DNA of 64,000 nt, taken from NCBI GenBank assembly GCA_965644315.1, contig CBFFRQ010000064.1, positions 1 through 64,000 on the forward strand. Reading direction: 5' to 3'. A model generated the notes under the pieces. The model did no database searches. It was not told the DNA's origin and worked only from the letters and a program-made list of their open reading frames with translations. This document shows, one piece after another, positions 1 to 36,222 of the stretch (position 1 is the first letter of the stretch; each line of letters begins with the position of its first letter). The DNA comes from Caecitellus pseudoparvulus. Lineage: Eukaryota > Protista > Bigyra: Bicosoecida. A program made the translations under genes and the position numbers.

Positions 1-3000
1 CAGTCACAGCTGTCTTGATCACATGCACAGCATTTTCCAATTGCTCAGCAGAGGAGACAAAGTCAGGCAGAGCAGCCCTCATTTTGTGCCTCCTTTGTAT
101 TCGGCCAACACGCGCATTCTCAAGCTCTTGCGTCTTTTCGTGCAATCTTCTCAAGACCCCCTCCATGAAGTTTAGCCCTGGGAGCAGGCCTGCCTTCTTG
201 ATATCCATGATGCATGCCACTGCAATATTTGCTGGGACTTTGCTCTTCATGTAATGTTCCACGGCATCTGTTGCAAGTGTAGCCACTTCCGGCGGGATGA
301 GCTTGGACAGGACAGGGGAGTGCTCCAGCACGACAGCAAGCACAAAGAGAAGCATGTACACGAATGAGCTCTGCTCTTCGCCCTCAGACGCCTCCACCAC
401 AGCTTGGATTGCGCCAGAAAGATCCCGCGCAGAAGACGACGTTTGCAAGTTGAAGGTGAACGCAGATTCTGCAAGAACGGGGACTGCCCAGTGTGGTACT
501 CTTTGAGCGGCCGCGGCACCTGAGCCTTCGCTACCTGCAACAAACGCCCGAGCCTCCTCAGCACTGCCGAGTTGACCGATGGCTGCCAACCGCTGGGTCA
601 CATGCTCAACTGCAGCGTCCATTTCTTCGGCTGGCGCTGCCTTGAGAGCTGTAGACGCCGCGTGCACCAAGTACCGGCGCATTGCGAAAGCAATGATGGG
701 GAGGACGTTTAGTTTGTGCATGAATGTCGCATTTCGAACTGTGCTGTATGCCTGCATCATGAAGGTCTTGCCCACTCCAGTGTCACCGGACATTAGCACA
801 GGCTGCCGCGAAAGGCAACGCTGGTGCACGTTCAACATGTTCATGAGCACGAATGGCGTGAGGATGAAACCACGAGATTCCAGAGCAGGCTGCAGGAGAC
901 TCGTGTTCAGCATGCCCAAAGTGGGCGCAATTGTCATTCGCATGTGGGCCAGCTTGACTTCATCCATGGCACGATCCTCACAAACTGACAGCACGAATGG
1001 ATGCGACGAGTCAATGCCGAACACTGTCGCAGGGGGTTCTTGTCGGTCTCGGCTGGACACCATGATGCTCCAATCAAGTACCTTGTTCTCACGATCGGTT
1101 AAGGCTTTCACACCTGTGTCCATCACGGAACTGAACACGCTGCTGTACCTCACCTTCTCGCTGGAATCTGTGGCGACTCGGCAGCTCTCGGACAGGATGA
1201 CGTTCAGCACTGGTCGCCAGAAGTCGTCGATGCACAGGTCAAACATCTGTCCTAAAGTCGCCTCTGAGTCTAAAGTCTCATCGCCGTACACACCAGAGTT
1301 GAATGCTTTCAAGTGCTTCTTCTGGAGAGAGAACAGTTCCGGAGTGGGGGTTATGTTAACGATGCTTGGAGCAGTGCCTGCGTGTACGAGCCCTCGACCT
1401 CGTCGCTTCATCTGCTGATCTGCAGGGGGTGGTATTCGAGCGGCGTTGTGCTCGCCCGCCTCCAGGAGGTTTCGCCACAGTCGAGACAGAACCTTGACAA
1501 AGGCTCCAAGATGGCCAACGGTGGGTGGGCCGGTGCGCCAGCCGCCGCCTGACGACGGCTGCGACTTCAATCCTTGGAGCACCGCCAGGCTTGTCAGTCC
1601 TTGGTGCAGGATGTGCCGACATGCATCGTCCGTTAATTCTGGAAGCTTGGAACGGACCAGTCGGCCCATCTCGCGGATGTCTTTCACGGACTCTTGAAAC
1701 GCTTGGTGGACAGCGTCAGTCGCCCCGCCAAGAGCAGACGCGAGCCCTATTGCCAAGCATGCATCTCGCCATGCCTCATCGATGACAATGTGCTGCAGCC
1801 CTGAGTGTGTAGCAGTCCACGTGGCTGGCAGAAGGGACAGAATAGGGAGCTTTGGCAAGAAGGGGTGGTCTCGGGGCTCGGTAGTGCCGGTTACGGGTGG
1901 CCAAGCTGGCTGCTTTCCGTGCTTCACGATGGCAGGCAGCTCCACCACCACATGGAGCTTGAAGTCAGGGCGGAATCCAGAGACCGTGCCATGCGCTGAA
2001 TCCCCCAGACAGTTGCACAAGGCAAGGTGTGCAAGAATACTGTCAAGCATAGCCAAGTCAGCCCCTTCTGTGAGCGACAAGTGCAGCCCCCAAACATTCA
2101 GGGAGCTGTCCCCGCACAGCGCAGTCGTGTACGCTTCAATCAGCGAGTCTGCAGTGAAGCCCTCGTGAACGTGAAAGCTGCTCACGTTTGAGCCTGCTAC
2201 TTTGCTCAGCTTCTGTAGAGCTTCGGTGGTTTTACCACACCCTGGGCCGCCTGTGACGACCTCAAGTCCGGCCAGGTGTTGCATGCTCTTGCCAATGTCT
2301 GCAGTCAAGGACTGGACGTCAGCCTCAGAAGGCTCCGGGCACAGTGGTAGCTCTGGAAGTTCAGTGAACATACCCACACCTGCAGGAGAAGTAAAGATGA
2401 GGTGCACATGCACACGCAGAGGTTGCCCGGCCACAGCAGCAGCGAGTTGCTCCAGCACAGTGGTCGGCAAGGTGTTGGGAGCAAGCACGTATGCGTAGCC
2501 ATAGGAGGCATCAGCGCACGCCAAGCAAGTCAAGAAGTCACTCAGATCGATGGGTGTTGTCGAGGCAGAGCATGAGAGCACTTGGTGAGGAGCAGGAAAT
2601 GAGTCCTTTGCTGCTCGAGAATGCAACAGGCACCCAGCAAGGCAGCTCCGCAGCGACGCGCCGGCACACAGCTGCCAGGTGGCTTGGATGGGGTCAGGCT
2701 CCTCCGGGTACCGTTGTACGCTTTGCAGGGCTTGAGCAAAAGCCTCAGCCGCCCAATTGAGTGCCTCACGTGGTGTGGACACTTGCGACAACGACTCGCA
2801 GCTATCCGCCATGGAAGCTGCAACAGCGCTGCGGTTTTCGGCAGCGGAGCCAATTCTTGCAGCCAAGTCGAACACCGCAACCAAAGAGTCCAAGTGCAAG
2901 TCCTCCTGAACTGCGGCTTTCTCTGCATCGGGCTCAGGTTCGCTTGTGCCCTCTCCTGAGGCAGCACCGCCAGGAGCAGCCCTGTCTTTTGCCATGGTCA

Positions 3001-6000
3001 ACACCAGTTCGAGGAGGCCCAGCAGCTGCTGTCGAGGCAAGTGAGACAGGTGTGGGGACAGACTGCGAGCTTTCTCCAGCGCTTCTTTCCACGCTGTCAA
3101 CTCCTCCTCCAAAAAGCCACAGAAAGCCTCCGTGGCCACAAGCAAGTTGCCCTCGTCAGATTCCACTCGCAGTGGGATGTCTCCCACCTTGGCCTGGTAG
3201 GCAGGATGCCCGAGCTGCTGCAAGTTGGACAACAGCTTCGCACAGAGCTGAGATGCTTCATAACTTGCGATGAAGTCATCGATCGCCGGATTCTTGACGG
3301 ACGTTCGCGACAGTCGCGCATTGAAAGCGTTCTCGTTCAACTGCTCTGGGGAGAGCACAAAGCTGGCTGATTCGCCTTGGGAGTACTTGAGCTGCACGCT
3401 TGCATGACCAGCATGGGCAGAAGTTTGGGCTTGGAAGGTCCCAAACTGTACAAAGTCTGGCGCGAGTAGTAAAATAGCTCTGTTACGATTCCCGGATGCT
3501 TCTCCGTCCAAAACATTTCGGAGAAGGTCCCAGTTTGCTCTCAGCTCTTCAAGGCTGCTCACCAACTGGTCAGTCGTGGTAAAGGGCCCATCTGTAGCAG
3601 CAGTATTCAGAAGGTCTCTTAATTTGTCCAGAGTTAGACTCGAGTGCGCCGCTGCTCCAGCTGCTCGCATGTGGGGCAGATTGGCCAGGAGGTCCTTCTG
3701 GTCTGCAAACTTGTCCAGAAGCTGCAAAACGAAGGGGTTCGCAGCTGAAGCTTTCTTCGTGATTTCAATCTTCTCGTCCAAGTTTTCGTCATGGTCTTGC
3801 AGGAAAGCAGTTACCTGCTGCAGTTCAGCAAGTGCCTTGATGCCTCGGAGCTCAATTGAAGAGCAGGACGGAAAAGCGGCCCTGACTTTGCCAAGCAGCA
3901 CCACGCAGTTACTCATCGCAATGCCTGCCAAGTTGCTGATGCAGGGGGACAGCTCGGACTCAACGCGCCCAGCTTCGTCTCTGGACCACACCCCGAAAGT
4001 GAGCAGCGCTTCACAGCACGAAAGAATTACACCTTTGAACGTCCACAGCTCTAGGCCAGCATTCAGGGCAGCCAGGCGAGCTTCGAGGCTGGCTGTGGAC
4101 GACCCTGGCTCGAGCTGGAAGAAAGTCGCCACCGATCGCATTTCCGTCGCAAGATCTGCCGAGTCAAACTTGGTGTCTGTCAGCAACCCGGTGAGCTGTG
4201 TGCCTGTAAAATCACCAAGCGTGCCTGTATCAGCCAGGACAAGCTCGTTCAACGCCTTGATCGCCTCATCGACTCTGGCATCCACTCTCTTTGCCAGTGA
4301 TTCCCCGTCGCGTGGCCGAGCGCGCTCGTTTGCGGAAGACAGCAAGCTCAGAAACAGCTGATTCAGCGGGCTGCTAAAGTGGCGAAGGGCTGTGTATGTC
4401 TCACGGGTCACGTTCAGCGCAGAGCGGGCTTCGCACACACAGGCTGTGGCATCACACAGCGACATGCCCGACAGCTCGTCCGGTGTGGCAAGGTCGATCA
4501 GCTCTGCGTCAGGCATGGCATCCTTCAGGAGGATGAGGACGGCACCATGCTCATGAAGCAGGGCCGTGGTGTCTGCAAGCTCTGCCTCACACGCTGCGCG
4601 AGCCTCCTGAAACGTGCCGGGTTGCTCCCCACACAAGCTGTCGAGCGCCAGTGCGATGTCATCGTTCCACTCCTCTTCCCATTGCTGCACTTGCGATACA
4701 GAGACGCGTCGCTCTTGAAAGGAAACCAGGAGAGTGCAAATAGACTTGCGGATACCTTCCACGCACTGAAACATGCCAGATAGCCGAGATGATGGCGTGG
4801 TCCTACGAAGCAGCTCAGCCAGTCGAGGTGCATGGTGCCAAGTCAACCAGCCAGCTTGACGTCCTCCGTCGCCGATCCGATGCAAGCATCCAAGCCCGAT
4901 TCCTTCAGTCAAAATAGTCAGAGATGTTGCAGGTGTGTGCTTGTCTTGAAAAAGCGTCTGAACCACCTCGAACTGCAAGTCAAAGGTTGAGGCGCTTGAC
5001 AAGAAACAAGCAGTCAACGACTTGCACAGTTTTCGGTATGAATCTTGCAAAACGGGTGGTGCGCTGTCCAAGGCTTCCTCAGCCTGTAAGCATGCGGTGC
5101 AGTTCAGTACGTGGATGTTTGACAATAATGTGCGCAGCGCATTTGCTGGAGCAGCGTGGCTTCCAAACCGTGAGTCGAGCGCCGCCTTGGGCGTTAACTC
5201 GCGTTGAGAGATGTGCAGAGTGAGCAGTTTTGCGATGGCAATTGTCATTCCCGGGTATGCGTCGGTACCCACAGCACCTGGGTGGTTCAAGATGAAACCA
5301 AGAACTTCAACCAGTGGATGTTTTACCGCCTGCTTTAAGCTGTGCGTTGAAAGGTTACACAATTCTTGCCAGACAGGAAGCGCATCCTTTACGAAATCCA
5401 CGATGGCCTGATTCGCACTATGGGCGCCTTCTTGGTCAACGATGCTGGTGACCTTGTTGAAGAGCCATTGACTCGCAAGCTGGGCTGAGGAACTCGAGCT
5501 GAGCAGACGTAGGAGTTCAGCAAGATGTACACCCTGTGACTTGTAGATCCACTCTCGAGGAAGCGTGGAAAGCAAGTGATCCTCCACTTCGCTTGCTACC
5601 CAACGAGGAGCATTGGCAATCGAAAGCACGCTGTGAAGCAGCTCAACGCGTGATGCCTCCGAGACATCGAAGAAGAGCCGCTGAAGGGTGACACTCGTAA
5701 TTTTCTGCACCACATTTGAGAAGCATGTTGCAAGAGGGCGTGGTGCGCCTTGGGGGCTCAGAGCTGTGTTGAACAGCGTGGTAAAAACACGAACGAAACC
5801 CGATGTCTCATTGCAAAGCTTGCTCTTGGACATGCTTGGTACGCTTTCCATGACAGTGCTCCGCTGGGCTCCAGACAGGCCTACCAACGCCTCTTTGTAC
5901 AAAGAGTCAGCAAACCAAAATGAGAAGAGCATGTCTAGAAACGACTCAAGGGTGTTTGTGCTATCTGCGCAGACTCGCAAGCAATCCAACAACAGCCTCA

Positions 6001-7933
6001 TGACAGCATTCTGCCTCGAGGGGCAGCTGGACACACGACTGAGAGCAACTGCTACTGACAGTGCCGAGTAGGCAGATGCATCAGAATCTGTACCACGTGC
6101 TGCAGACTCTGGAATGCGTGTCAGCCTGTCCCAGTTGCTGGCCCGTGGTCGTCTGTCGCCAGCTCTCAAGACCATGCACAAGGTAAACAGGACAAGTTGT
6201 GCGCTTGCTGGCAACGCGGCACCTCGCTGCCCAGGCTCGGTTGCCTCCAGCAACATGCTTTCTGCGCAAGCCACATACATCGCATGCGATTCTGCATGGT
6301 CATCTACCCAGCTTCGCATCGCCGCCACTGAGCCTGGTTTCAGTTTCCCGAGCCCTGACATGGGAGTTGGAGCACCTAGGGTGAAGAACCGTTTGCAAGC
6401 TTGCTGAAAGGCACTGACACACTGAGACCTTCCGTGGGTGGCATGCATGTCGCAGTTGAGAACAGCTTGAAGCGCTGGCAGCAGCCCGATCGCGTCCGTG
6501 ACAGGCTGGCTTTGCACGTGTTCGAATGCTTCCTTCAACAGCTCCGCAAACTGAACGTGCCAGAAGGGGTCCAACCCAGGAAGCTTCAGCAAGTCTTTCT
6601 CACTCGTGGAAGTGAACACAATGCAGCCTGCTTTAGAGCCAGGTTTGCGGACTTGCTCCAGCTCCTTTTTCAAGTGGCTCACGATTCGTGGAACTGAGTA
6701 TAAAGTAAGCAAACTTCTCGGATCCTTAGGCAAAGGGACACCATCAGCAGTATCTGATTGCTCTGCTGGAAATGTTGTGCTGGAAGTGCCGAATAAGTTG
6801 GACGAATATCCTTGGTTTGCCACGGCATGTGGGGTGTAAGCTGCAGTGTCGCTTGGTACGGACTCCGCTCTGGCAGCAGCAGACCCATCATATGGAGCAC
6901 CGTACGCTTGCGCTGAATAACTAGGAAAGGAACCAGCCGTGCCTGCAAGGTGGTGGTGGCGATACGCTGTCCCCGCCGAACCATGACCAGCTGCAGCTCC
7001 ACCGAATCCTGGCGTCGAAGGAGAGGAAAGCGGCCTCTGGGGTGGAGCGCGAATTTGCGGGTGTGTCTCACGAGTAGAAGCCCTACCATCACGTTCACTT
7101 GGCCAAGGTGAAGAGTTGCCTTCCCCTGTTGGGGTTGGTGAAGGCTCGCGCGATTTGTGAGAGTCAACTCCCAAAGTGCCTGGCCCCATCGCTTGCTCCT
7201 GGTCTCCAAATTCCCCCGGACCGCCTGCAACACCAGCTTGGCCGATGTGATTCAGGCCTGGAGTGACAGTTTCCGCACTCTCTTGCTCTGCCTCATCTGT
7301 CGTAGATGCGGGGCTTCCCCATGGCAGCCATGCTTGCTCGGGCTCCCAGCAGCCATCGGTCAACCTGAAGCTCACATCACCAACTACGACCTCGGTAGTC
7401 TCACGACCCCCTTTCACGAAAGCCTTGTTGGTATCCTTCCGCACAAAGTGCCGGATCGTTTCATTCCACTCCACACAGCTTTGCGCCTCGCTTGGCACCC
7501 AGCTGCGTCGCTCCTCATGATCTGAGCGGGTGGCCGCAGCAGCGGCACCTGTCACCACACTTGCTGGGATCTGTGCAGTTCTTTGGGGGGGGGCGTGAGA
7601 GGTATGTGTGCCTGTCAAGATTGGAGATGCGCCACCAGTGCCACTGCTCTGCGCTGCCACATCGGCCTGACCGTGCTGCGTGTCAGTGCTTGAGGAAGCG
7701 AAGCTGGACTCTTGCTCAGTCTCATGATACTCGAAGATGCTGCCATCTGGAGTGAGATACTTGCCCTTGGCATCTTCCCAGCGAAGTATACCAAGGGTGG
7801 GATGGCGAACTGAGTCCAGGCGTCGGCCCCGACAAACGAAACGCCCTTCCTCTTCGTCCCATTCAGCTTCCGCTACCCACAGGATAGCACAAGTTTCAGT
7901 GCCAAGGGAAGGTAAAGCCTCATCAGCTGCCAT
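1..7933 (-). CDS. RNF213/mysterin-like giant AAA+ ATPase (probable E3 ligase); 3' end runs off the window
   Basis: Minus frame (codon first base = 1 mod 3) has an upstream stop at 8192-8194 and first ATG at 7933 (MAADEALPS). The segments I translated were open, and the ORF track lists no ORF in this frame in 1-8100, consistent with one uninterrupted frame. RNF213-like motifs occur in the right order: QVLSCSASTTPIDLSDFL..YVLAPNTL (cf. recalled EVLLCTPATTFEEV); Walker A GGPGCGKT at 2228-2251; LHLSL..DSILAHLALCNCLGD..HVVVEL; FILTPFVLMNMLNVHQRCLSRQPVLMSGDTGVGKT with Walker A at 764-787 (cf. recalled ELTTDN..RCGIPVIIMGETGCGKT). Confidence 0.8.
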   Translation of the reverse strand, partial: MAADEALPSLGTETCAILWVAEAEWDEEEGRFVCRGRRLDSVRHPTLGILRWEDAKGKYLTPDGSIFEYHETEQESSFASSSTDTQHGQADVAAQSSGTGGASPILTGTHTSHAPPQRTAQIPASVVTGAAAAATRSDHEERRSWVPSEAQSCVEWNETIRHFVRKDTNKAFVKGGRETTEVVVGDVSFRLTDGCWEPEQAWLPWGSPASTTDEAEQESAETVTPGLNHIGQAGVAGGPGEFGDQEQAMGPGTLGVDSHKSREPSPTPTGEGNSSPWPSERDGRASTRETHPQIRAPPQRPLSSPSTPGFGGAAAGHGSAGTAYRHHHLAGTAGSFPSYSAQAYGAPYDGSAAARAESVPSDTAAYTPHAVANQGYSSNLFGTSSTTFPAEQSDTADGVPLPKDPRSLLTLYSVPRIVSHLKKELEQVRKPGSKAGCIVFTSTSEKDLLKLPGLDPFWHVQFAELLKEAFEHVQSQPVTDAIGLLPALQAVLNCDMHATHGRSQCVSAFQQACKRFFTLGAPTPMSGLGKLKPGSVAAMRSWVDDHAESHAMYVACAESMLLEATEPGQRGAALPASAQLVLFTLCMVLRAGDRRPRASNWDRLTRIPESAARGTDSDASAYSALSVAVALSRVSSCPSRQNAVMRLLLDCLRVCADSTNTLESFLDMLFSFWFADSLYKEALVGLSGAQRSTVMESVPSMSKSKLCNETSGFVRVFTTLFNTALSPQGAPRPLATCFSNVVQKITSVTLQRLFFDVSEASRVELLHSVLSIANAPRWVASEVEDHLLSTLPREWIYKSQGVHLAELLRLLSSSSSAQLASQWLFNKVTSIVDQEGAHSANQAIVDFVKDALPVWQELCNLSTHSLKQAVKHPLVEVLGFILNHPGAVGTDAYPGMTIAIAKLLTLHISQRELTPKAALDSRFGSHAAPANALRTLLSNIHVLNCTACLQAEEALDSAPPVLQDSYRKLCKSLTACFLSSASTFDLQFEVVQTLFQDKHTPATSLTILTEGIGLGCLHRIGDGGRQAGWLTWHHAPRLAELLRRTTPSSRLSGMFQCVEGIRKSICTLLVSFQERRVSVSQVQQWEEEWNDDIALALDSLCGEQPGTFQEARAACEAELADTTALLHEHGAVLILLKDAMPDAELIDLATPDELSGMSLCDATACVCEARSALNVTRETYTALRHFSSPLNQLFLSLLSSANERARPRDGESLAKRVDARVDEAIKALNELVLADTGTLGDFTGTQLTGLLTDTKFDSADLATEMRSVATFFQLEPGSSTASLEARLAALNAGLELWTFKGVILSCCEALLTFGVWSRDEAGRVESELSPCISNLAGIAMSNCVVLLGKVRAAFPSCSSIELRGIKALAELQQVTAFLQDHDENLDEKIEITKKASAANPFVLQLLDKFADQKDLLANLPHMRAAGAAAHSSLTLDKLRDLLNTAATDGPFTTTDQLVSSLEELRANWDLLRNVLDGEASGNRNRAILLLAPDFVQFGTFQAQTSAHAGHASVQLKYSQGESASFVLSPEQLNENAFNARLSRTSVKNPAIDDFIASYEASQLCAKLLSNLQQLGHPAYQAKVGDIPLRVESDEGNLLVATEAFCGFLEEELTAWKEALEKARSLSPHLSHLPRQQLLGLLELVLTMAKDRAAPGGAASGEGTSEPEPDAEKAAVQEDLHLDSLVAVFDLAARIGSAAENRSAVAASMADSCESLSQVSTPREALNWAAEAFAQALQSVQRYPEEPDPIQATWQLCAGASLRSCLAGCLLHSRAAKDSFPAPHQVLSCSASTTPIDLSDFLTCLACADASYGYAYVLAPNTLPTTVLEQLAAAVAGQPLRVHVHLIFTSPAGVGMFTELPELPLCPEPSEADVQSLTADIGKSMQHLAGLEVVTGGPGCGKTTEALQKLSKVAGSNVSSFHVHEGFTADSLIEAYTTALCGDSSLNVWGLHLSLTEGADLAMLDSILAHLALCNCLGDSAHGTVSGFRPDFKLHVVVELPAIVKHGKQPAWPPVTGTTEPRDHPFLPKLPILSLLPATWTATHSGLQHIVIDEAWRDACLAIGLASALGGATDAVHQAFQESVKDIREMGRLVRSKLPELTDDACRHILHQGLTSLAVLQGLKSQPSSGGGWRTGPPTVGHLGAFVKVLSRLWRNLLEAGEHNAARIPPPADQQMKRRGRGLVHAGTAPSIVNITPTPELFSLQKKHLKAFNSGVYGDETLDSEATLGQMFDLCIDDFWRPVLNVILSESCRVATDSSEKVRYSSVFSSVMDTGVKALTDRENKVLDWSIMVSSRDRQEPPATVFGIDSSHPFVLSVCEDRAMDEVKLAHMRMTIAPTLGMLNTSLLQPALESRGFILTPFVLMNMLNVHQRCLSRQPVLMSGDTGVGKTFMMQAYSTVRNATFMHKLNVLPIIAFAMRRYLVHAASTALKAAPAEEMDAAVEHVTQRLAAIGQLGSAEEARAFVAGSEGSGAAAAQRVPHWAVPVLAESAFTFNLQTSSSARDLSGAIQAVVEASEGEEQSSFVYMLLFVLAVVLEHSPVLSKLIPPEVATLATDAVEHYMKSKVPANIAVACIMDIKKAGLLPGLNFMEGVLRRLHEKTQELENARVGRIQRRHKMRAALPDFVSSAEQLENAVHVIKTAVT

Positions 7934-8189: not shown

Positions 8190-8213
8190 CGTCAACCTCA
8201 CGTGAAGTTGACG
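8190..8213. promoter_or_regulatory. 24-bp near-perfect palindrome with a CACGTG core, upstream of the RNF213-like gene
   Basis: CGTCAAC-C-TCACGTGA-A-GTTGACG, one mismatched pair, ~260 bp upstream of ATG 7933. The regulatory role is inferred. Confidence 0.35.
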
Positions 8214-8559: not shown

Positions 8560-11500
8560 TCAATCCGTAGGCTTCATCGACGCGGTATCTTTCAGCTTCC
8601 TCTGGGAGAGGGCAGACCGCAGCAGCGGATTCTTGGACGCAAATCTACCCTTCGCGATCGCGTCAGCAGCGCTGCCGGACAGGCTGGACCGGTGTGACTT
8701 TGAAGCTGCCAATGCAGCCATGACATGCACTGACGGGCGAGATGCCCGCTCAACTGCGCTGCCCCCCTTTTCGCCGTCAGTGCGTGCCGCCTTTCTTCCT
8801 GACAGCGACAGCCTGGGCGCGATCTCAGTGGCGTAGAATGATTTGAGCATCCACACCACGATGCCGCCAATAAAGACCACGTTCATGCCTGTGAGTACGA
8901 CAGTGACGGCGACTCCAGCAGCGTGGTGATGAGGCCATGGGGTTTGTTCACCGGAAGTCAAGGCTGGGTCTGATGCGACAGCCCCTTGGAATAGCATCGC
9001 CCCGCCGGCAACTGTGGCCATGGACAGGGCCAGGGAAGCGACATCCAGCGCATTGAACGTTGCTTCAGTAAAGGGCGCCCACCCCGCCGACACAATCATG
9101 GCCGTCATAATGACCAACATAGCGAAGGAGACTTGCCAGAGGAGCCCCTGCGGGCGGAGCGCTACGAGCACCATGGCAAAGAGGGCTTTGCGGGCCATGA
9201 TGACAACTTCGTACCAGTAGAACTCTGGCTTGTAGCCCAGAAACAGCAGCCCCAGCGTGCGCCTGTGCCAATCAGAGGAGTGGAGGCGCTGCCGCCGTCT
9301 CCACAGCAGGGTGAAGAGGCCGGCGGGGAGGCCGAGCACAACGAGTAGCAGCAATGGCAGGCCGACGCCGAACCTCCATCCATTGTTACCAGCACTGCTG
9401 CAGAGCACATCGAGATCCTCGAGCAGTCGGTCTTGGCCGCCGATGTCCACACACGTGAACAGCTGCATCACCGTGCGGGTAAGGGGGGTGTAGAACAGGA
9501 ACGCCACCACGAGGGCCGCAACCAACACCTGCCGACGAGCCTCTTGCAGTGTGGCTTTGGTGCAGCTGGCCAAGGCAAAAGAGCCCGCTGACAGAACAAG
9601 CAGCAAACACACCGGCAAGAGCAGCGTGATGAGGACCTTGAGCCGGAAGGCTGACCCCACGGCGTTGGGCACCTCCTCTTTGCGGACACAGTCCAGGGAC
9701 ATGAGCTGTGTGCTGGCGGCGGCTGCCGTATCAGACGCTGCAAGGAGTGCTGAAAATGGGTCTGGCCACTCCAAGTCAAAGGACAGCATGAGCGCAGTCT
9801 GCTGGACGTGGGTGACAAGCAGCTTCTTTGCGACACTGTGCGCCTTCTTGCTGAGTCCCCGTGTTTTGACCTGGCCACGAACAAGCCAAGACACACCCAG
9901 CAGAAAGACAAGGAAGAACACAAACAGCAGCCCCAACGAACGGGAAGTGCCGCCCACACAAGGCTGGCACAGGGTCCCGCCCAGGCGCCCAAAGCCAGCG
10001 GCACACTTTGCGCACTTTGGGCCAGTGTGGCCCTGCGCACAGTCTGCAGTGGCTGCGGATGTGTCTGAGAAGTTTGCTGAAATATTCGCCGCAGCTGCCT
10101 GAACAAACTCTTCCCGGAAGGCAGCTGGTAGGGAGGCTGGCGAGAGCTGCGCTGTGGTCGAGTTGGGAAGCAGGTACGCCAAGTCTTGGGGCTGCACCAG
10201 CCTGTACGCTCCTCGAGGACACATGCGCTGGTCCAGGCACTGTTCGAAAGTGAGCCCATCCTCGCTCCATTCGATCCTAGAAAAGCCGGCTTCGCTTCGT
10301 AGCCACTCCCATGGCCCACCAGTGCAGACAGCTCCGAGAGGGCACGGCTGGCACTGTGCCTTGGACCAATCACTTCTCCTGGCATGCTGTGTAGCAAGAA
10401 ACTCTGCACCACTGCACTTTGCGAAGACAGGCCCCTCCACGCGGGACGCTGGGCTGCGCAGCGTCTCGTGTACCAGGTCTGTTGCAGCACGAACTTGCAA
10501 CCACACTGGGACTTGTGGTGCGTCCAGTACACGCACATCGACCACGTGGCCCCCAGCGGGCACATCCAGCTGGCCGCGACATGCCTCTACCGGCTCTGAG
10601 CTCACGAGCACATCGCCAGCAGCTGCACCTTCAACTGGGACAATCCTGGAAGCCAGAGAAGCATTCCTTCCTATGTCAAGCCAAGGGTCTGTGGAGAATT
10701 CCACAACCCATGCCTTCACAGGGCTGAGCACCGTCACCTCATCGTCCATCCAGGTGAATGCCACCCGTACAGTGCCAGATACCCCGTCCCTATACCCGCA
10801 CGGCTGTTGTGGAGCACTCGTCGGAGCTTGGGGCGTCACGATGTACGACACGTCCGTCCCGGAAGCAGAGCTGGAGGCAGTGGTGATGCCACCAACAGTC
10901 GTAAGTGAAACGCTCAAGTGCTGCATGGCAGCAGCTGTCCTTGCTGCAGGTGGGGGAACAGCCGACACAGAGATACTGCCCACTCCCAGCACTGTCCACG
11001 AGTGCTTGGGGACCTCGACCTGTCCGATTCGGACAGCATCGATGCCAAGGAAGTTTCCCCCTTCGATTGACAGCGCTTCCCCTGTGCGGACCACCCGTGG
11101 GGTAACGCGAACCACTGTCGGGGGGCCAACAATTTGCACAGCTCCCTGTTCTGAGGTCACAGTGAGGCCTTCATTGGTCAGAATAGTCACGTTGCCAAGT
11201 TGAATGGAACCAGCTGGTGGTCGTGGCAATGCTGCCGCATTCAGATCCTCGCACGTGAGACTCCTCCCTCCAGCGCCCAGGGAAAGGTTTCCACCGGCTG
11301 CTTCGCACGACGTACCCGCAATCCACATGCCCCCTCCAGAGCCTTGAGGATCTCCCAGCGCAACGCCTTCGACCGCCACACGCTGAGTAAGGCCAGATCC
11401 AGAGGCCCCCGGCAGCAAAATGCTCCCTTGCACCTTCAAAATTTCGGGGACCGCAAAACGGACAGCCTGGGGCAGTGCTCCTGCCCAACCAGAGGCAAGG

Positions 11501-14500
11501 ACCACTTTGAGATCAGCTTGGGTGCCGCCTCCCGACGCCACGAGGCTTGGTGTCAAACACTCGAAGTACTGCCACGTTGTCGGGGGCAGCAGGGCACAGG
11601 AGGCATTTCCTATAGAGGCAGCCTGAATGCTGGCCAGACCCCCGGGCAGCCCCAATCCACTCCCGAAAATGCGCAGGACTGTGCCCCCCGCCGCAGACAC
11701 GATTGCCGGCAGCACTGCAGTGATGCTCGGAACTGTGTACACTCGAACAGGCGGCGTTTCCACAGCAGCAAGGACGCCACGAACCTTGAGTGTCACCTGG
11801 ACAGATCCAGAGGAACTCGCAAGTGAGTGGGAATCCACATTGACACAGCCCATGGCAGTGCCGTTGCCGAGCTCCACGCTCCCGCAGGGAACACTGCCAA
11901 GCGACATGCTCACATCAACGCCCTGCAGGGAATCGCTAGGAAGTTCTCTGCCGGCAAACCAGAAACTAACGTTCGAGCTGCCTGGTTCAAAGGCAGAAAA
12001 AACAGCGCTTGGTTGCACGTCAGTGATGACTGGTGCTTGGTACGCGAGCTGCTGGGATACAAACGTCGCTGTTGAACCATCCACTCGAGTCACAACCAGC
12101 GGAGACAGAGACCCAATGCCAGGAGGCATGCTACATGTCAACGAGGTTGGCGTGGATGAAATGTTCACGCACTGCCCAAACCCTGCCTGCACAGCGGTGA
12201 TATCCGCATACGACTGATCCGTGTTTGGGTCGCTCCGTCCAAAGTTCATGCCAAATACTTCCAGTCGTCCCCCAGATTGAGGCAGCGTCAGAGGCACGAC
12301 GCCAGATATCGCCGGACTACCGATGATGTGCAGAGCTCCTGGCAGGCGGGCTGCGACGCCTGCTACCTCCACCTGCAAAAGCCCGTTCGCTGCACCAGGG
12401 TGGAAATCACTCGTGTTCAACTGCAAACACCGCACAAACGAGCTGTTGACATGCTGAACGGTGGGACATTGCGCACCGGCAAGTGTGACTCGCAGTTGTG
12501 TGCCGTCAACCCCCAGACTGCTGCCGTGTATGGTGAAGTTCAGAAGAGCTGCTCCGGTTCCAAGCATGAGCTGGTCTGGCGTTAGAGAGTGCGCTTGTGG
12601 CGCAGCGTACACAAGCGGTGCGTAGTTCGAGCCCTGCCCGGCGACGGACACTTGAAGCCATACGTTGCCAACGCCAGGGGGCACGATGCACTGCACGTGG
12701 CCTTCCGCCAGACTGGTGATGTTGCAAATCCCGATCGGCAGTCCAGGGGCTGGTGCTGAATGCAAAGTGACGTTGACGATTGAGGGCGGCAGCACTGAAG
12801 AAGGAGTTGCAGGCAGGACAGCGGCCTCAGATGTGTGCCACAGGTTGCTTCCGAAGATGCTCACTGGGCTGCCTTGAACAGGCAGACTCGTGCTAGGCTG
12901 CAGAACGGACACGGTGGGTGGGTGGTACTGCACGGTGGCATTTGCCGGCCCATGGATAGGGGAGGGAACCCCTTCAATACCATGCGTGAGCGACAGCAGT
13001 GCTCCCCCAGAGAGGTCAGGCAGTGGCAGGGGGGGTGCCAAGCACAGAATACTGCCCGTGGATGCCAGCCTTGGCTGTGCGCATGGTTCGCCCCCTACAA
13101 ACACGTCAAATGAAGCGTCCTCTGTCAAAATAGCAAGCGGCCAGAAGTCTCCCAGCAGCCGAATTTGGGAACCTCCCGAGCTGCCTACGCGGGGGAGGCT
13201 GCCTGGCACGGCTGCGTCCTCCACAGCTGTGATGAGCAGCAAGGAATCCAGCGACCAGCCGAGCGGCCACGCACAGGTGGAGGAGAACGGCTGCAGCGAA
13301 GGTTCAACAAAATCAGATTCCTGGCAACCAAGTAGAGGCAGGCACATGCCATTGCCTTCCAGGACTGGCACTCCAAAAGCTCTGCAGGTGACTCCGGTGG
13401 CTGCAGCTGGGGTTGGCATGTCAACGAGTTGACTGCTTGACATGATGTCGAACAACCACGGGGGAACAGACTGCAGGCGCTGCATGTGGCAGGCTGGACA
13501 TGTGCGGACCTGGGAGACGCTGGCCCAGGAAAGGCGGCTACCAACTGCACGGAACAAGGGGCTGATGCCAGACACGGAAATGAAGTCACCCAGGTCCAGC
13601 GCTGCAGGGGCGGCGAAGCCCATGTACGTGGCAGAGGGAGTCAGTGGCGCACTGTTGCCCCAGCCGACGTTGGAGTGCGCATTCATCCCAACACAATGCA
13701 AGTGCCCTCCTTCAAGGGTGACGCAGGTGGCAGAGTGCATGGCAGAAATGCACGTAGCAGTATGCGCAATGGCTCCTGGTCCTTCGGATGCCGGGGTTTC
13801 ATCGTCTCCGATGAAGCGGGTGTGGCCATTCAACAACTCACCACCATGGTTTTCCCCAAAACACTGCACTGCTCCGGACTCCAGGATGGTGCATGAGTGG
13901 CCCTCCCCGGCCGAAACCTGCACAGCAGCGCCTGAAAGCTCCACTTCCCCCAGAGTGGACGGCAGCTCATTGTCACCGAAGACTTCTTCTATGGCCAGGC
14001 TGGGCTGCCCCAGCTTTCCCGCACTATAGTAGCCAAAGTTATACCCACCTTGCCCCCAGCACTGCACGCCGCCATTAGCAAACAAAGCACAAGCGTGGTT
14101 CCGTCCACATGAAACCTGCACCGCGTCAGAGCGAGTCAGCGACGACAGCCCTCGAGCATTGATTGTGCCGAAGGAGTCTCCGAAAGATGTTGATACGGTG
14201 GATCCTTGTCCGAGTTGCCCGTAGTTGTTTGACCCCACACACTGCACACTGCCGCTAGCTTGCGCGGTGCATGTAAACTGGTACCCAGCGCAGACATCCA
14301 CAGCAGGCCCAAGCAAACTAACCGTGTCGCCCGGCAGAGGAGACTGTACACTCGAATATCCAGGTCGCAGAGCCTCCCCGTAAGTGGACGAGCCCCAGCA
14401 CCTCACTGCACCTGTGCTGAGCACAACACAAGAATGCGCCGACCCTACAGACAAGCGTTTGGCAGCTGCACCCAGGGGCACTGCACTCGAAGCACTTGCA

Positions 14501-17109
14501 TCTTCTGTGGACCTTGGCGACACGCCCAGGTACTCACCATCGCCCCAACAATGCACCTCGCCCGACACGAGCAGAGCACAGGAGTGCTCAAAACCGCTCC
14601 CAGCTTCGACGGCTTCCGCTGGCAGGAATGCCGCCGAGTACAGGTCTTTGGGTGCCAGGGTACGAGTCGCATCCGCGAGGTCTTGCCGGCCCAGCCCCAC
14701 CGTTCCAGCATCCCCCCAACAACGAACGCCGCCCCAGACTGTCACTGCACACGCAGAGTCCCGTTGGCCAGCAACGCGAACATACTCAGCATGGCGCGGA
14801 GCCTGCGTCGCCAACGAGGAAATGAGGGCCCCAGGAAGCAACGGATCCGCCCTGGTCATGCCAGTCTCACGAACCTCAACTTCGTAGCCCAGCGTTGTTG
14901 GGCTCGACACGGGGCGAGCTGCTTGTCCTCCATGGGCTTTCCCGAACGTCTGCAGCGCGCCACCTCGGAGAAGCGCCACCGTGGTGCCTGTGCCACATGC
15001 CAAAGCTACGGCCCGATCGGACAGCTGCACCGGTCCTTGCAGGTACACAGGCTCGTCATCACCGACCATTCCGGCCCTGCCACTATCGGACAAACGCCCA
15101 CGAACTCCCCCCGTCTCCCCACTGCTGTCCCCACCCCAACACACCGAGCGCCCGTCCACCAGCACGGCACACGAGTGCCACCAACCACAGCACACAGAAG
15201 AAGCAGTAAATGGCATGAAAACATGTGATGCAGTTGTGATGTTCTCGTCGTCGCCCACCGAGTCGGTGCCGCCAACGCCAAGGCGCCCTGCTGTGACAGC
15301 AGGCTGTGCACTCCCTGCATCCCCATTCGCACCCCAGCAGTACACCTGCCCAGACACTGAAGTGGCGCACGTGTGAAACGCGCCAGCACTGATGGCTTGC
15401 ACGGGGGCGTCCAAAGGTATGGGGCCAACTGACGGCGCCCACTCGTCATCCCCCACAGAACCTGCCATACCGTAGCCCAGCACGCCTGCTCCGCCACCGC
15501 CGACCACGTGCGCATCATTCAGACCCCAGCAGAAAACACTGAGATTCGCAGTCAAGGCACACGTGTGGAAGCGGCCCGCAGAAAGGTCCACGACAGGGGA
15601 AGGGAACAGCAACTCTTGGGAGTGGCTTGCGTTCGCCACGAAGCCAGCGTGCCCCGCCCCCAACTGACCGAAAGTGCCATTGCCCCAGCAACGCACAGTC
15701 CCACTCCACATCAAGCCGCACGCGTGGCCCTCCCCTTGAACTACCTGCTGTACCTGGCCGGGGAGCGGCACCGGGCCTGCAGCTGCTGGAGTCTCATCGT
15801 CGCCGATAGACGCATTGCTCCCGCTGCCGAGCACCCCCAGCCTGCCTTCGCCCCAACAGAAAGCCGCCCCCGACACGAGAGCTGCACAAGAACTGAAAGG
15901 CCCCACACTTACACTCGACGCAGGAGCTGGTAGTGAGACTTCGGGTACTTGGGCAAGGGGCAAGTCGCCTGCAACATCATTCACGTGGCCAGCACCGAGG
16001 CGACCCAAGCCCATGTCCACGCCAACCTGAGCTGAATCTGAAGCCAAGCCAAAGCACTTGACCCCGCCGTCGAACATGATTGCACACCCATGTTCGTCAC
16101 CAAATTCCACTGACACTGCCCCTGCAGACACAGGCAGCAGGGTTACCTCAGCAAGGCTCTGGCTGGAGGAGACTGGCGGAGAAACCGCGTGCCACGAAGC
16201 GGGCGACTTGCCAAAAGGGGAAGACGCATTGCCGCCCTCGATGCCTTGATTCAAGGGGAGCACCGAATGTGCGTGGATGGACTGGAAAGGGACAATGGAC
16301 GCAGTGCCAGCTGCTCTGATAAAGTGCTTCGCGGACCCTTCGAAGCCAAGGAGGAGGGCTTGCACTGGCGCGTGCATGACAACACGAACAGGATGAGGGC
16401 CAGACTGTGTCCAGTTCCTGGGGTGCGCCGCCTCAGGCAGCGTTCCAACGAGAGTTCCGTCTCCCAGGCTCCACGCCTGCACAGGGTGCCCCACCGCCAC
16501 TCCTGAGCACAAGTCGCCGCCTTCCAACTCCACCCAGCGCCAACCACGCCACGCCAGCATGCGCAAGCAGGCCACGTGTGCTTCTGGGTGCCCCCTCTGC
16601 CATTCCAGGCCAAAGACGGTGAAAATAGTTGCTGGCTGCTCTAACTCCACAGTCTCCCAACTGGTGTTGCCGATACTGCCCTGGCGCCTGAGGAGCACTG
16701 TCGAGGAGGCATTCGCCCAGCCTGAGGGAAGAGGCCTTGACTCATTCATATCCAAGTGCACGTCAAGCGCCACGGCCCACTGCGCGGAGTAGGGCAGGAA
16801 CGGCAGGTGTGAACCGCGCGGACCAGGATCTACAGTCACGTTGAAGTCCCAGCGCAGGCGGTCAGCTTGCTCCGACACGGCGAGCGCCAGCAGCTGGACG
16901 GACGCGCCACCCGCTGAGGTACTGTGCACTGTGACGTCCAGTGGAGCCGTGAGCTCTGCAGCATGCCCTGCTGTCCCACCACTCCACGCGCCAGGTGGTA
17001 TGGAGGAGTATGAAACGAACTGGACTTGATCCTCGAGGTTCGTTGAGCGGCCGATCCCGAACAAAATCAACGCGAGGAAGGGCACAAACACCCTTTGTCC
17101 ATGAGCCAT
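8560..17109 (-). CDS. Large multi-pass surface receptor-like protein: signal peptide, RCC1/BLIP-II repeats, IPT/TIG repeats, FN3-like, Cys-rich, ~7 TM
   Basis: Intronless ORF 8560..17247. First ATG 17109 gives the signal-like MAHGQRVFVPFLALILFGIG. Many GxxHxC..GxVxCWG RCC1 blades (~16120-13600). IPT-like PxIxxVxP..GG..LxIxGxN repeats (~13200-10850). CQPCPLGAVC and CAQGHTGPKCAKC. Hydrophobic helices with SFDLEWP and GYKPEFYWYEVVIMARK. Confidence 0.85.
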   Translation of the reverse strand: MAHGQRVFVPFLALILFGIGRSTNLEDQVQFVSYSSIPPGAWSGGTAGHAAELTAPLDVTVHSTSAGGASVQLLALAVSEQADRLRWDFNVTVDPGPRGSHLPFLPYSAQWAVALDVHLDMNESRPLPSGWANASSTVLLRRQGSIGNTSWETVELEQPATIFTVFGLEWQRGHPEAHVACLRMLAWRGWRWVELEGGDLCSGVAVGHPVQAWSLGDGTLVGTLPEAAHPRNWTQSGPHPVRVVMHAPVQALLLGFEGSAKHFIRAAGTASIVPFQSIHAHSVLPLNQGIEGGNASSPFGKSPASWHAVSPPVSSSQSLAEVTLLPVSAGAVSVEFGDEHGCAIMFDGGVKCFGLASDSAQVGVDMGLGRLGAGHVNDVAGDLPLAQVPEVSLPAPASSVSVGPFSSCAALVSGAAFCWGEGRLGVLGSGSNASIGDDETPAAAGPVPLPGQVQQVVQGEGHACGLMWSGTVRCWGNGTFGQLGAGHAGFVANASHSQELLFPSPVVDLSAGRFHTCALTANLSVFCWGLNDAHVVGGGGAGVLGYGMAGSVGDDEWAPSVGPIPLDAPVQAISAGAFHTCATSVSGQVYCWGANGDAGSAQPAVTAGRLGVGGTDSVGDDENITTASHVFMPFTASSVCCGWWHSCAVLVDGRSVCWGGDSSGETGGVRGRLSDSGRAGMVGDDEPVYLQGPVQLSDRAVALACGTGTTVALLRGGALQTFGKAHGGQAARPVSSPTTLGYEVEVRETGMTRADPLLPGALISSLATQAPRHAEYVRVAGQRDSACAVTVWGGVRCWGDAGTVGLGRQDLADATRTLAPKDLYSAAFLPAEAVEAGSGFEHSCALLVSGEVHCWGDGEYLGVSPRSTEDASASSAVPLGAAAKRLSVGSAHSCVVLSTGAVRCWGSSTYGEALRPGYSSVQSPLPGDTVSLLGPAVDVCAGYQFTCTAQASGSVQCVGSNNYGQLGQGSTVSTSFGDSFGTINARGLSSLTRSDAVQVSCGRNHACALFANGGVQCWGQGGYNFGYYSAGKLGQPSLAIEEVFGDNELPSTLGEVELSGAAVQVSAGEGHSCTILESGAVQCFGENHGGELLNGHTRFIGDDETPASEGPGAIAHTATCISAMHSATCVTLEGGHLHCVGMNAHSNVGWGNSAPLTPSATYMGFAAPAALDLGDFISVSGISPLFRAVGSRLSWASVSQVRTCPACHMQRLQSVPPWLFDIMSSSQLVDMPTPAAATGVTCRAFGVPVLEGNGMCLPLLGCQESDFVEPSLQPFSSTCAWPLGWSLDSLLLITAVEDAAVPGSLPRVGSSGGSQIRLLGDFWPLAILTEDASFDVFVGGEPCAQPRLASTGSILCLAPPLPLPDLSGGALLSLTHGIEGVPSPIHGPANATVQYHPPTVSVLQPSTSLPVQGSPVSIFGSNLWHTSEAAVLPATPSSVLPPSIVNVTLHSAPAPGLPIGICNITSLAEGHVQCIVPPGVGNVWLQVSVAGQGSNYAPLVYAAPQAHSLTPDQLMLGTGAALLNFTIHGSSLGVDGTQLRVTLAGAQCPTVQHVNSSFVRCLQLNTSDFHPGAANGLLQVEVAGVAARLPGALHIIGSPAISGVVPLTLPQSGGRLEVFGMNFGRSDPNTDQSYADITAVQAGFGQCVNISSTPTSLTCSMPPGIGSLSPLVVTRVDGSTATFVSQQLAYQAPVITDVQPSAVFSAFEPGSSNVSFWFAGRELPSDSLQGVDVSMSLGSVPCGSVELGNGTAMGCVNVDSHSLASSSGSVQVTLKVRGVLAAVETPPVRVYTVPSITAVLPAIVSAAGGTVLRIFGSGLGLPGGLASIQAASIGNASCALLPPTTWQYFECLTPSLVASGGGTQADLKVVLASGWAGALPQAVRFAVPEILKVQGSILLPGASGSGLTQRVAVEGVALGDPQGSGGGMWIAGTSCEAAGGNLSLGAGGRSLTCEDLNAAALPRPPAGSIQLGNVTILTNEGLTVTSEQGAVQIVGPPTVVRVTPRVVRTGEALSIEGGNFLGIDAVRIGQVEVPKHSWTVLGVGSISVSAVPPPAARTAAAMQHLSVSLTTVGGITTASSSASGTDVSYIVTPQAPTSAPQQPCGYRDGVSGTVRVAFTWMDDEVTVLSPVKAWVVEFSTDPWLDIGRNASLASRIVPVEGAAAGDVLVSSEPVEACRGQLDVPAGGHVVDVRVLDAPQVPVWLQVRAATDLVHETLRSPASRVEGPVFAKCSGAEFLATQHARRSDWSKAQCQPCPLGAVCTGGPWEWLRSEAGFSRIEWSEDGLTFEQCLDQRMCPRGAYRLVQPQDLAYLLPNSTTAQLSPASLPAAFREEFVQAAAANISANFSDTSAATADCAQGHTGPKCAKCAAGFGRLGGTLCQPCVGGTSRSLGLLFVFFLVFLLGVSWLVRGQVKTRGLSKKAHSVAKKLLVTHVQQTALMLSFDLEWPDPFSALLAASDTAAAASTQLMSLDCVRKEEVPNAVGSAFRLKVLITLLLPVCLLLVLSAGSFALASCTKATLQEARRQVLVAALVVAFLFYTPLTRTVMQLFTCVDIGGQDRLLEDLDVLCSSAGNNGWRFGVGLPLLLLVVLGLPAGLFTLLWRRRQRLHSSDWHRRTLGLLFLGYKPEFYWYEVVIMARKALFAMVLVALRPQGLLWQVSFAMLVIMTAMIVSAGWAPFTEATFNALDVASLALSMATVAGGAMLFQGAVASDPALTSGEQTPWPHHHAAGVAVTVVLTGMNVVFIGGIVVWMLKSFYATEIAPRLSLSGRKAARTDGEKGGSAVERASRPSVHVMAALAASKSHRSSLSGSAADAIAKGRFASKNPLLRSALSQRKLKDTASMKPTD

Positions 17110-17830
17110 ACTGGCTGATCTTGGCGTGGGGTGGTGAGCTGCAAAAGCAGCGTGCTGCCAGCAGCAGTGCAGCAGGTCGTGGCGACGAAACGCCAGCGTG
17201 AAACACGGAGCCGCTACAGCCTGACACCCGAATTCCCAAGAGGTCAAGACAGAGGGAGGAAAGGCGGGTGATTATAATTGCCCAGGGCCTCTGCAACCCT
17301 CCTGATACCGCCGGGAACAAAGTGCTTGCAATGGAGTAGCGAGTAAGCGCCGAAGTGGCTGGCTTGCGTTGCACCAGACGGGAGTGCCAAGCTGGGGAAA
17401 GAGCTCGCACAACGCGGTAGGTGCAGAGAGCAGCTTCCAGAAATGTGGAGTGCCTAGAAGAATGGTGTGGGGGCCTGGCTTTTAAAGCACAAGAGCGCCT
17501 GCCTTCTTTCGCGCATGCATGGTGTGCAGAGCAGGCTGGCAGGAAGGCCGTTCGAAAGGGCACTGATGGTGAACATCACCGCACCTAAGTCCCAAGCAAG
17601 CCAGCACATTTATGACTATTGAGCCGGTCCGCGATTGCCTTGTTGTGGCGTGCTTAGCCGCAGCAGTCAGGCGCCCTCCCAGCCTCGCACGCCAGCTGTA
17701 CAGAGAACTTCCGAGCCCACAATCCAGTGGCTGGCAGAGCTCGTAATAGAGCCACAAAACAAGTTCACCCACTCACATCTCGTCAAACTACCTAGCAGCA
17801 TGTAGAGTGCTTTGGCAGCTCCCTGTCTCG

Positions 17831-24900: not shown

Positions 24901-25898
24901 TCGCCCACCGAGGCAGTGCGTACTCCCACGCGGCCCTGCAGCAGCTACGCCCCGTGCCGCTGGACCGCCTGGGCGTCGTGCGCACCACTGCCCTGCTGCA
25001 CGGCCAAGGTAACGACACGCCCGGCCTGTGGGCGGCGCAGCGCCCCAGCGCGCCGTCACCCGCGCCCCCAGCCGCTGCCTCCAGCACCTCCACACCCCCG
25101 CGCCCCCACGCTGTCCCTGTCGGCGGGCGTGAGCGTTCCTCCAGCTGGGGCGACACGCTGGGCGACGCCATGCCGCGCAAGGCCTCCCTGAGCAAAGTGG
25201 CGGCGGTGCAGCCTCACTATGGCGCCAGTGGCGGGACAGCTGCACCCCAGTTCATACCCTACCCCCACCCTGGCCCGGCGCCAGTGCCTTCAGGCAGCTC
25301 AGGGACAGGGGGAGCAGCTGCACCCTCCGGCAAGGGCGCCGGCGTGGAGGCCAGCATCCAGACCCTGCCGCCGTCCCAGCCCCTGCTGGGGCGCCTGGCC
25401 CTCATGCTGCTGCAGTTCCTGGGCGCGCACTTGGAGCCCCGCACCATGGGCTTGCACGTGCGGTGGGGCAAGCTGGTGCCCATAGCCCAGAGCATGGACC
25501 CGGTGTGGGTGCCCGACCCCTACGACACCAGCGACAACACCAACGTGGGCCGGAATGCCTTCCGCTTCCCCCAGGTGCAGGCCCTCCTGCGCCACGCCGT
25601 GCACACGCTGTGCTCCTGTGAACAGCGGGAGCTGCCGGAGCTGGGCCAGTGGATGCAGGGGCTGCCTGCTGTGCGGGCCCAGCTGCATGCGTGGCGTGTG
25701 GCGGTGCGCGGGGACAAGCGGGCTCCCCTGGCCACGGGGCCTGCTCCGCCCCAGGCAGAGGAAGAGCAGGAGATGAACGTCCCTGCCACACGCTCAGAGT
25801 ACATGCGCCTCATCGCTGCGCGCTTCCCCCTCCTGCACCGAGTGCTGCGCTTCGACGTGGGCCAGTGGGCAGACGCGCCGGCCACGGCAGGTCATTGA
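21931..25898 (+). CDS. Non-canonical poly(A) polymerase / terminal nucleotidyltransferase (TRF4/PAPD5-like) with long N-terminal extension
   Basis: LFGSFVTGLAIPSSDVDV, VPVIKL, MDITFN, GLNDAFTGGVSSY and PDPYD..NVGRNAFRFPQV. Two 5' introns link ATG 21931 to the long ORF, so the start is inferred. Confidence 0.85.
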
Positions 25899-35800: not shown

Positions 35801-36222
35801 CCTCCAGGGCATCAGCGCCTTCCTCTGCCTGCACGGTGAAGGTGTAGCTCAGCTCCTCCACGGCGTCGCCGACGCCGCCGCTGAAGTATCGCTCGGCAGG
35901 CAGGCGCCCATTTGCGCCAGCACTCCCACGGAAGCCGCGGGTGCCGCACACTTCCGCGTGGGTCTGCGCCACCACACATGCTGGGTGGGCGATGTCGAAT
36001 CCCCTGTCATGGCGCGCAGGGCGACGAGTGCAGGGGGCCAGGCAGGGAGGGCCAGTTTGCTTTCGGCACACTCACTCGCTTGCTCTTTGCTGCGCCAGTG
36101 CCTCAGCCACTGCCTTGCTCACTGCAGCGAGGGGGGAGGCGCGAATAAGGGACGTGCTTTTGCGTCTTCGCTCACTGCAGCCAGGCACTGTGCGCCTCAC
36201 CTTGCTCCATCGCTGCCGCCAT
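32874..36222 (-). CDS. CCDC96: CCDC96/CFAP184 (DUF4201) coiled-coil ciliary protein with ~700 aa N-terminal extension
   Basis: C-terminal KEHLADGLALIDFEQLKIENSTLNEKIEDRNEELHKLRKKTTTTVQVLTHVKEKL. Start MAAAMEQ at 36222 inferred through two short introns. Confidence 0.85.

Follow-up and report, generated by a model that had tools for sequence, protein, structure and literature searches.

Does a unicellular flagellate encode a giant AAA+ protein of the RNF213/mysterin type and, if so, what might such a protein do? The question is raised by the left end of the 64,000-nucleotide stretch of Caecitellus pseudoparvulus DNA analyzed here (the window), which begins at base 1 of contig C64 and in which the first-pass annotation had proposed an intronless, RNF213-like minus-strand frame of at least 2644 codons that was absent from the ORF list. 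Translation with the standard code bears out the frame itself: 2644 codons without an in-frame stop follow the first Met (ATG, nt 7933; minus strand, nt 2-7933), and the stop-to-end frame, which opens at nt 8191 and reaches the first base of the window, comprises 2730 codons. The chance of a stop-free frame at such a composition is about 1e-44, close paralogues share the Met-Ala-Ala start, and neither an alternative genetic code nor an intron is needed to account for a single open frame. The ORF was missing from the list because it runs off the window edge. Its only two Walker A motifs lie exactly where they had been placed, with GGPGCGKT at residue 1895 (nt 2251-2228, minus strand) and GDTGVGKT at residue 2383 (nt 787-764, minus strand).

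The open frame and its surroundings

Apart from 2 differences, a contig assembled from a public DNA run agrees with nt 1-256 of the window, and it extends 34 letters beyond the end of C64; the window end is therefore an assembly break, and the gene goes on. Contigs from an RNA run cover parts of the RNF213-like ORF at 90-99% identity but may stem from other copies, so that expression of the window copy does not follow from them. GC content drops from about 68% to 56% toward the left end of the window, and GC3 is 0.58 in the RNF213-like gene compared to 0.82-0.83 in two other window genes, a non-canonical poly(A) polymerase/TUTase-like gene (22191-25898, plus strand) and a CCDC96/113 gene (32874-36071, minus strand), the latter fitting a flagellated host. 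The neighboring gene (8560-17247, minus strand) is also intronless and encodes a protein of about 2850 residues with RCC1 repeats and IPT/TIG domains, the hydrophobic C-terminus of which probably spans the membrane several times. Linkage of this gene to the RNF213-like gene was considered and rejected, upstream genes being different at the other copies.

Table 1. Features of the RNF213-like ORF in the window (nucleotide positions of the window; residues of the window protein)
Feature	Position	Strand	Residues	Basis or remark
RNF213-like giant gene without introns, 5' part (~40%), interrupted at the contig end	1..7933	-		complete C57 paralogue has 6300 codons
Trp/Tyr-rich mini-module, copy 1	7694..7897	-	~13-80	49% identical to C184 copy, 28-33% to C57/C95
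Mini-module, copy 2	7319..7489	-	~149-205	type repeated 3 times in C57, 5 times in C95
Pro/Gly/Ser/Ala-rich spacer, probably disordered	6719..7318	-	206-405	composition
Arm modeled as entirely helical, placed where RNF213 has its stalk	4187..6718	-	~406-1249	AlphaFold model
RNF213 linker, boundaries approximate	2714..4186	-	~1250-1740	profile to 7oik, HHalign 99.9%
Degenerate AAA1 without Walker motifs, boundaries approximate	2282..2713	-	~1741-1884	profile, HHalign, map in PMC7311170
AAA2 with Walker A at nt 2251-2228 and, as in RNF213, a non-catalytic strand in place of Walker B	914..2281	-		alignment with RNF213 homologues
AAA3 start, intact Walker A at nt 787-764	704..913	-		motif and alignment
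Large variable insertion between Walker A and Walker B of AAA3, Walker B lying beyond the contig end	2..703	-		alignment

Homology of the AAA core

Searched alone, the window protein gives weak Pfam matches to AAA_5 and AAA_7, and a single-sequence PDB search returned midasin as a weak best match (E 1.4e-5). A profile of residues 1100-2644, however, matches mouse RNF213 structures at E 4e-26 (PDB 7oik residues 1277-1866 together with the AAA3 Walker A). Neither midasin nor dynein is matched by this profile up to E 1, both also drop out when a complete paralogue serves as the query, and the HHalign probability of the profile against an RNF213/RZ-clade profile is 99.9%. The second half of the complete paralogue on contig C57 matches human RNF213 at E 1e-20, three stretches aligning through AAA5/AAA6 and the hinge, which lie beyond the window. 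Rodent RNF213 used as a reciprocal query retrieves from this genome only the present RNF213-like family, and a midasin-like gene exists separately (C43:451080-456683; a 6798-codon open frame, three AAA_lid_7 matches). Together with a Foldseek search in which RNF213 ranks first (see below), these results uphold the RNF213-like identity proposed at first pass, and the feature is almost certainly both real and RNF213-like.

The published domain map of RNF213, with an AAA1 lacking motifs and an AAA2 with Walker A only (PMC7311170), is reproduced in the window as far as it extends. Walker A, Walker B, and sensor 1 are all present in AAA3 and AAA4 of complete paralogues (C57; C173 has the motifs as well), and AAA4 of the complete paralogues also carries an arginine-finger motif. 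AAA3 contains an insertion of about 245 extra residues, so that its Walker A and Walker B are 306 residues apart in C57 as against 52-60 residues in vertebrates, Rigifila, and Amoebophrya; across a wide range of other relatives the spacing is 175-313 residues.

N-terminal modules and helical arm

According to the first-pass annotation, the roughly 1700 N-terminal residues resembled nothing recognizable. Residues ~1250-1880, however, correspond to the RNF213 linker and AAA1. Each mini-module comprises about 45 residues, the two window copies being separated by low-complexity sequence (residues 1-405), and the number of modules varies from one in C184 and C197 to two in the window, four in C57, and six in C95. 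An exhaustive search of 1.84 billion representatives yielded no relatives of the mini-modules outside the family, the sole real match in that search being a C62-type arm from a metagenome (P0030). No PDB entry or Pfam family matched the mini-module profile, and Pfam gave no CBM20 match at the N-terminus of the window protein. Matches of the mini-modules to SRCR, PPR, Ig, and autotransporter-repeat proteins were discarded as summed weak repeat scores. The metagenomic protein P0030 (L035:10001-14827) carries its C62-type arm (74% over 1040 residues) fused to an unrelated 550-residue tail, which suggests that the mobility of arms is not tied to the AAA core.

In the AlphaFold model, residues 401-1500 form consecutive helical bundles (pLDDT 66). 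RNF213 accounts for seven of the eight Foldseek matches to the arm model at E <=0.001, with low TM-scores; for the top match, also RNF213, E is 1e-5, TM 0.27, and rmsd about 40, and the linker part may drive this ranking. On position and fold class only, residues 406-1250 may thus be homologous to the RNF213 stalk. No sequence match was found between the window arm and the arms of other species, and ESM Atlas searches with the N-terminus and the arm returned nothing informative. Within the genome, the window arm is 21-45% identical to those of C57 and C95 up to residue 900, with synonymous sites saturated.

Copies in the genome and chromosome ends

The genome contains about six to nine RNF213-like loci, a range that allows for some pairs of copies being alleles. 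The complete C57 copy (6300 codons) is 73% identical to the window protein; the others comprise 4689 codons in C184, 4496 in C197, at least 4045 in C173 (cut by the contig end), 2483 in C95, a tandem pair in C62 of 5957 codons (C62a, complete) and 3973 codons (C62b, truncated) with about 35% identity in the AAA core, and, on the 8.1-kb contig C129, only the last 1624 codons. Telomere repeats terminate five of these contigs (C95, C129, C173, C184, and C197), and in each the 3' end of the gene points to the telomere. No telomere repeat is seen in the window, although the window copy is probably subtelomeric too, because it has the same orientation as the telomeric copies and GC content falls toward the left end.

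Several of these chromosome ends have features of their own. The AAA core of C95 is broken at an interstitial telomere repeat (L022:4185-4471), after which comes a repeated telomere-adjacent ORF that is also present on C173 and C184, and the telomere-adjacent ORFs of C197 have, by eye, the look of a non-LTR retroelement. The C184 and C197 copies (C184:17764-31833, C197:28844-42334) lack about 1370-1700 residues of arm and linker, the Thr of their AAA3 Walker A is replaced by Asp, and the candidate catalytic Cys of the finger described below is replaced by Ser, with the frames remaining open; it is possible that these copies are pseudo-enzymes or decoys. As estimated from the profile alignment, their deletion ends close to where the mouse variant delta-N1487 was engineered. 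The loose ends of reads at nt 3410 were rejected as proof of an arm-deletion junction, the same sequence occurring in C57.

Comparison of the window ORF with C57 and C95 gives dN/dS values of 0.17-0.43, which support a translated gene under purifying selection; no 200-codon segment exceeds 0.55, and none is above 1, so that positive selection was not detected at this resolution. The window arm differs from those of C57 and C95 by 53% at the DNA level, while C57 and C95 differ from one another by 6%. The cores diverge by 8-16% (dS 0.15-0.4), the nearest relative of the window core switches between C57/C95 and C184 along the gene, and conversion-like tracts of 1-2% divergence link C129 with C197 and C184. 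We infer from these patterns that an old arm sits on a core homogenized by recombination.

The missing 3' end

It is likely, though unproven, that C129 carries the 3' end of the window gene, with about 5 kb missing between them. The case is circumstantial: C129 is one of two orphan 3' ends and C64 the only orphan 5' end found, the other candidate (C173) is excluded as a direct continuation by a nucleotide divergence of 16% over the overlap, and the window and C129 each stand somewhat apart from the other copies, differing by 10-16% and 10-14%, respectively, compared to 3-10% among most others. The finger in C129 is intact.

A zinc finger in the C-terminal region of the paralogues

The first-pass annotation had pointed downstream to AAA4 and to RING or RZ modules. 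As judged from the paralogues, AAA4 is present as described above, whereas RING and RZ are absent and a one-zinc finger, apparently of RBR type, occurs instead. The RING pattern, found in vertebrate controls, is absent from C57, C62a, C173, and C184, and there is no Pfam RING match. The RZ-finger profile detects six controls and no copy in this genome, and no PF20173 match above the cut-off was found genome-wide.

The finger in the complete copies consists of four zinc-type Cys residues plus a fifth Cys at the position of the RBR catalytic residue. The distances from the second Cys to the candidate catalytic Cys (+10) and from there to the next Cys (+5) are those of HOIL-1 RING2, and this spacing is common to C57, C62, C129, C173, and Mallomonas; the ENA protein P0002 has the same spacing and fifth Cys with an altered first Cys pair. 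HOIL-1L RING2 is the best PDB match of the finger profile (E 0.044), the Pfam match is IBR (E 0.06), ESM Atlas features place the finger in IBR/Rcat clusters at 0.92 (10/10 agreeing), and the model shows a helix followed by short strands (pLDDT 60-80); taken singly, these matches are weak. The finger lacks the canonical His two residues past the Cys, a second zinc site, RING1, and IBR. In HOIL-1, the Cys aligned with the candidate residue is Cys460, which is catalytic, and the canonical His is also missing (PMC9834252). On this sequence evidence the finger is probably RBR Rcat-like.

Other searches gave little. The C-terminal model, of too low confidence (pLDDT 46) for an informative fold search, had no match, and word searches with the finger and the C-terminal region matched nothing. 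Alignment of the C-terminal helical region to the E2-binding CTD of RNF213 covers 70 columns at a probability of 0.7%, which is not significant; the vertebrate CTD profile gives no score on the copies in this genome, and PF21108 has no match in this genome or in any control genome. The RNF213-like genes are not listed in a genome search with PF22191. That search did return canonical IBR/Rcat domains in three very long open frames at C92:108890 (4327 codons), C30:55085 (3128 codons), and C31:703974 (2639 codons).

Proposed function and alternative explanations

We regard it as probable that the window ORF is the protein-coding 5' part of an RNF213-like giant of about 6000 residues, in which mini-modules, helical arm, and linker precede a dynein-like ring of six AAA units, with an Rcat-like finger in the C-terminal E3 region. 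Without RING and RZ in its complete copies, the family departs from RNF213 proper in two defining features. The window copy would continue like the complete paralogues, with C129 as the candidate 3' end. By likeness to RNF213, in which ATP binding at AAA3/AAA4 activates transthiolation (PMC12075652) and the E2 docks on the CTD (10.1101/2021.05.10.443411), the intact protein would be an ATP-gated Cys-relay ubiquitin ligase. Its E3 module would be turned on by ATP bound at AAA3/AAA4; ubiquitin would be handed over by an E2 to the finger Cys and by this Cys to whatever target the variable N-terminal arm has bound. The N-terminus of simian RNF213 (CBM20/stalk) is likewise fast-evolving and has been proposed to pick targets (PMC11549300). 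Least certain are two further steps, namely that the targets might be invading microbes, viruses, or their glycans or lipids, and that the telomeric family might vary its recognition arm by recombination on a homogenized catalytic core. The ATPase anatomy is directly observed; ligase activity is deduced from the finger in other copies, and a defensive role, which is plausible, from homology and family dynamics. A bolder version, which we put forward tentatively and hold to be doubtful as a whole, is that these genes are variable immune receptor-ligases at chromosome ends, in which an RNF213 scaffold bears a Parkin/HOIL-1-type finger, subtelomeric recombination shuffles arms and repeat modules over a homogenized core, and armless copies with altered catalytic residues serve as regulators or decoys.

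An intact ATP-gated E3 might instead have a housekeeping role, for example at lipid droplets or in organelle or protein quality control, with its variability reflecting ordinary subtelomeric recombination rather than pathogen conflict. Subtelomeric genes recombine regardless of function, and the selection analysis detected no positive selection. RNF213 itself also acts on lipid droplets (10.1101/2021.05.10.443411). Nevertheless, the expansion in copy number, the variable repeat counts, and the apparently disabled copies look typical of conflict genes, and the animal homologue is a pathogen sensor (PMC11549300); we consider a housekeeping role unlikely.

Quite unlikely, in our view, is that the window copy lost its 3' part through a break at the chromosome end and is now a remnant or decoy without a ligase. 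There is precedent in C95, which stops inside the AAA core at its interstitial telomere repeat, and in C62b, which ends at 3973 codons; moreover, no separate contig with AAA3-AAA6 of the window copy was found in the genome. The window frame, however, stays open and homologous up to the last base, with purifying selection up to residue 2600, reads go past an end that is devoid of telomere repeats, and C129 supplies an orphan 3' end whose finger is intact.

We judge it improbable that the Cys finger is a structural zinc site and the family an ATPase scaffold devoid of ligase activity of its own. This would fit the absence of the canonical His, which leaves half an Rcat, the Ser in place of Cys in C184 and C197, and the fact that in most protist relatives of the same clade no such finger is seen. 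On the other hand, the fifth Cys is kept in C57, C62, C129, C173, Mallomonas, and P0002, HOIL-1 also lacks that His, and in the copies with Ser both the arm and the Thr of the AAA3 Walker A are gone as well. Finally, a diverged midasin or dynein, for which the single-sequence midasin match and the weak AAA_5 and AAA_7 matches could be cited, is scarcely credible and is rejected because of the profile match to RNF213, the separate midasin-like gene on C43, and the reciprocal search.

If the window gene does encode part of an RNF213-like ATPase with an Rcat-like finger that tags pathogens, then RNF213-type pathogen tagging would be ancient and could work with catalytic fingers of exchangeable kinds. 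The family also hints that marine protists feeding on bacteria may possess a ubiquitin-based cell-autonomous defense. Two questions surround RNF213 itself, namely how it recognizes pathogens that are unrelated to one another and how the binding of ATP is relayed to its catalytic site (PMC11549300, PMC12075652), and for these the family offers ready comparisons in the form of the same ring with another finger, variable arms, and armless or altered copies. What makes the family interesting is the exchanged finger, together with the insertion in AAA3 and the mosaic make-up of copies linked to telomeres.

Relatives and comparison with known systems

RNF213-like proteins are common among protists in the databases (Mallomonas, Ochromonas, Pavlovales, Amoebophrya, Rigifila, Mastigella, and a choanoflagellate), and a flagellate gene of this type is less surprising than the first-pass annotation held. 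The word search that recovered many of these relatives also returned vertebrate RNF213. A search of the openly accessible literature found no papers on protist RNF213-like proteins; the only such tracing found is that of the RZ domain of ZNFX1 to choanoflagellates (10.1101/2025.10.14.682297). In a FastTree of the AAA core, read with long-branch caveats, RZ-bearing proteins group together, and the present family joins Mallomonas and P0002 with a support of 100. Accessory modules of insertion-bearing RNF213-like proteins vary widely: P0007, P0012, P0014, and P0015 combine the AAA3 insertion with SAM, USP-type (PF00443), or VWA/VIT modules in place of RZ. P0019 (KAH9257843.1), deposited as Batrachochytrium salamandrivorans, falls on a long branch in the insertion-bearing protist set, far from Glomus, and its species label may be wrong.

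Midasin/Rea1 and dynein share with the family six AAA units in one chain but give no profile match and are without the RNF213 linker and motif pattern. Mallomonas annulata EP01041_P001672 and P0002 belong to the same AAA-core clade and have both the AAA3 insertion and the finger, although core identity is about 30%, the arms are not alignable, and no mini-modules occur there. Among RBR ligases, the Rcat/RING2 of HOIL-1L (PDB 8BVL, 7YUJ) is closest, sharing the first zinc site, the position of the catalytic Cys, and a GCD-type motif without the canonical His; the present finger, which is known from the paralogues and C129 with none of it in the window, differs in having no RING1, IBR, or second zinc site and in lying inside an AAA protein of 6000 residues. 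RNF213/mysterin itself (mouse PDB 6TAX, 7OIK; human 8S24) shows arm, linker, and six AAA units in the same succession and the same distribution of motifs, with none in AAA1, Walker A only in AAA2, and catalytic motifs in AAA3 and AAA4. Relative to RNF213, the family lacks RING and RZ and has instead an Rcat-like finger further toward the C-terminus, an AAA3 insertion of about 245 extra residues, Trp-rich repeats in place of CBM20, and multiple, mostly telomeric gene copies.
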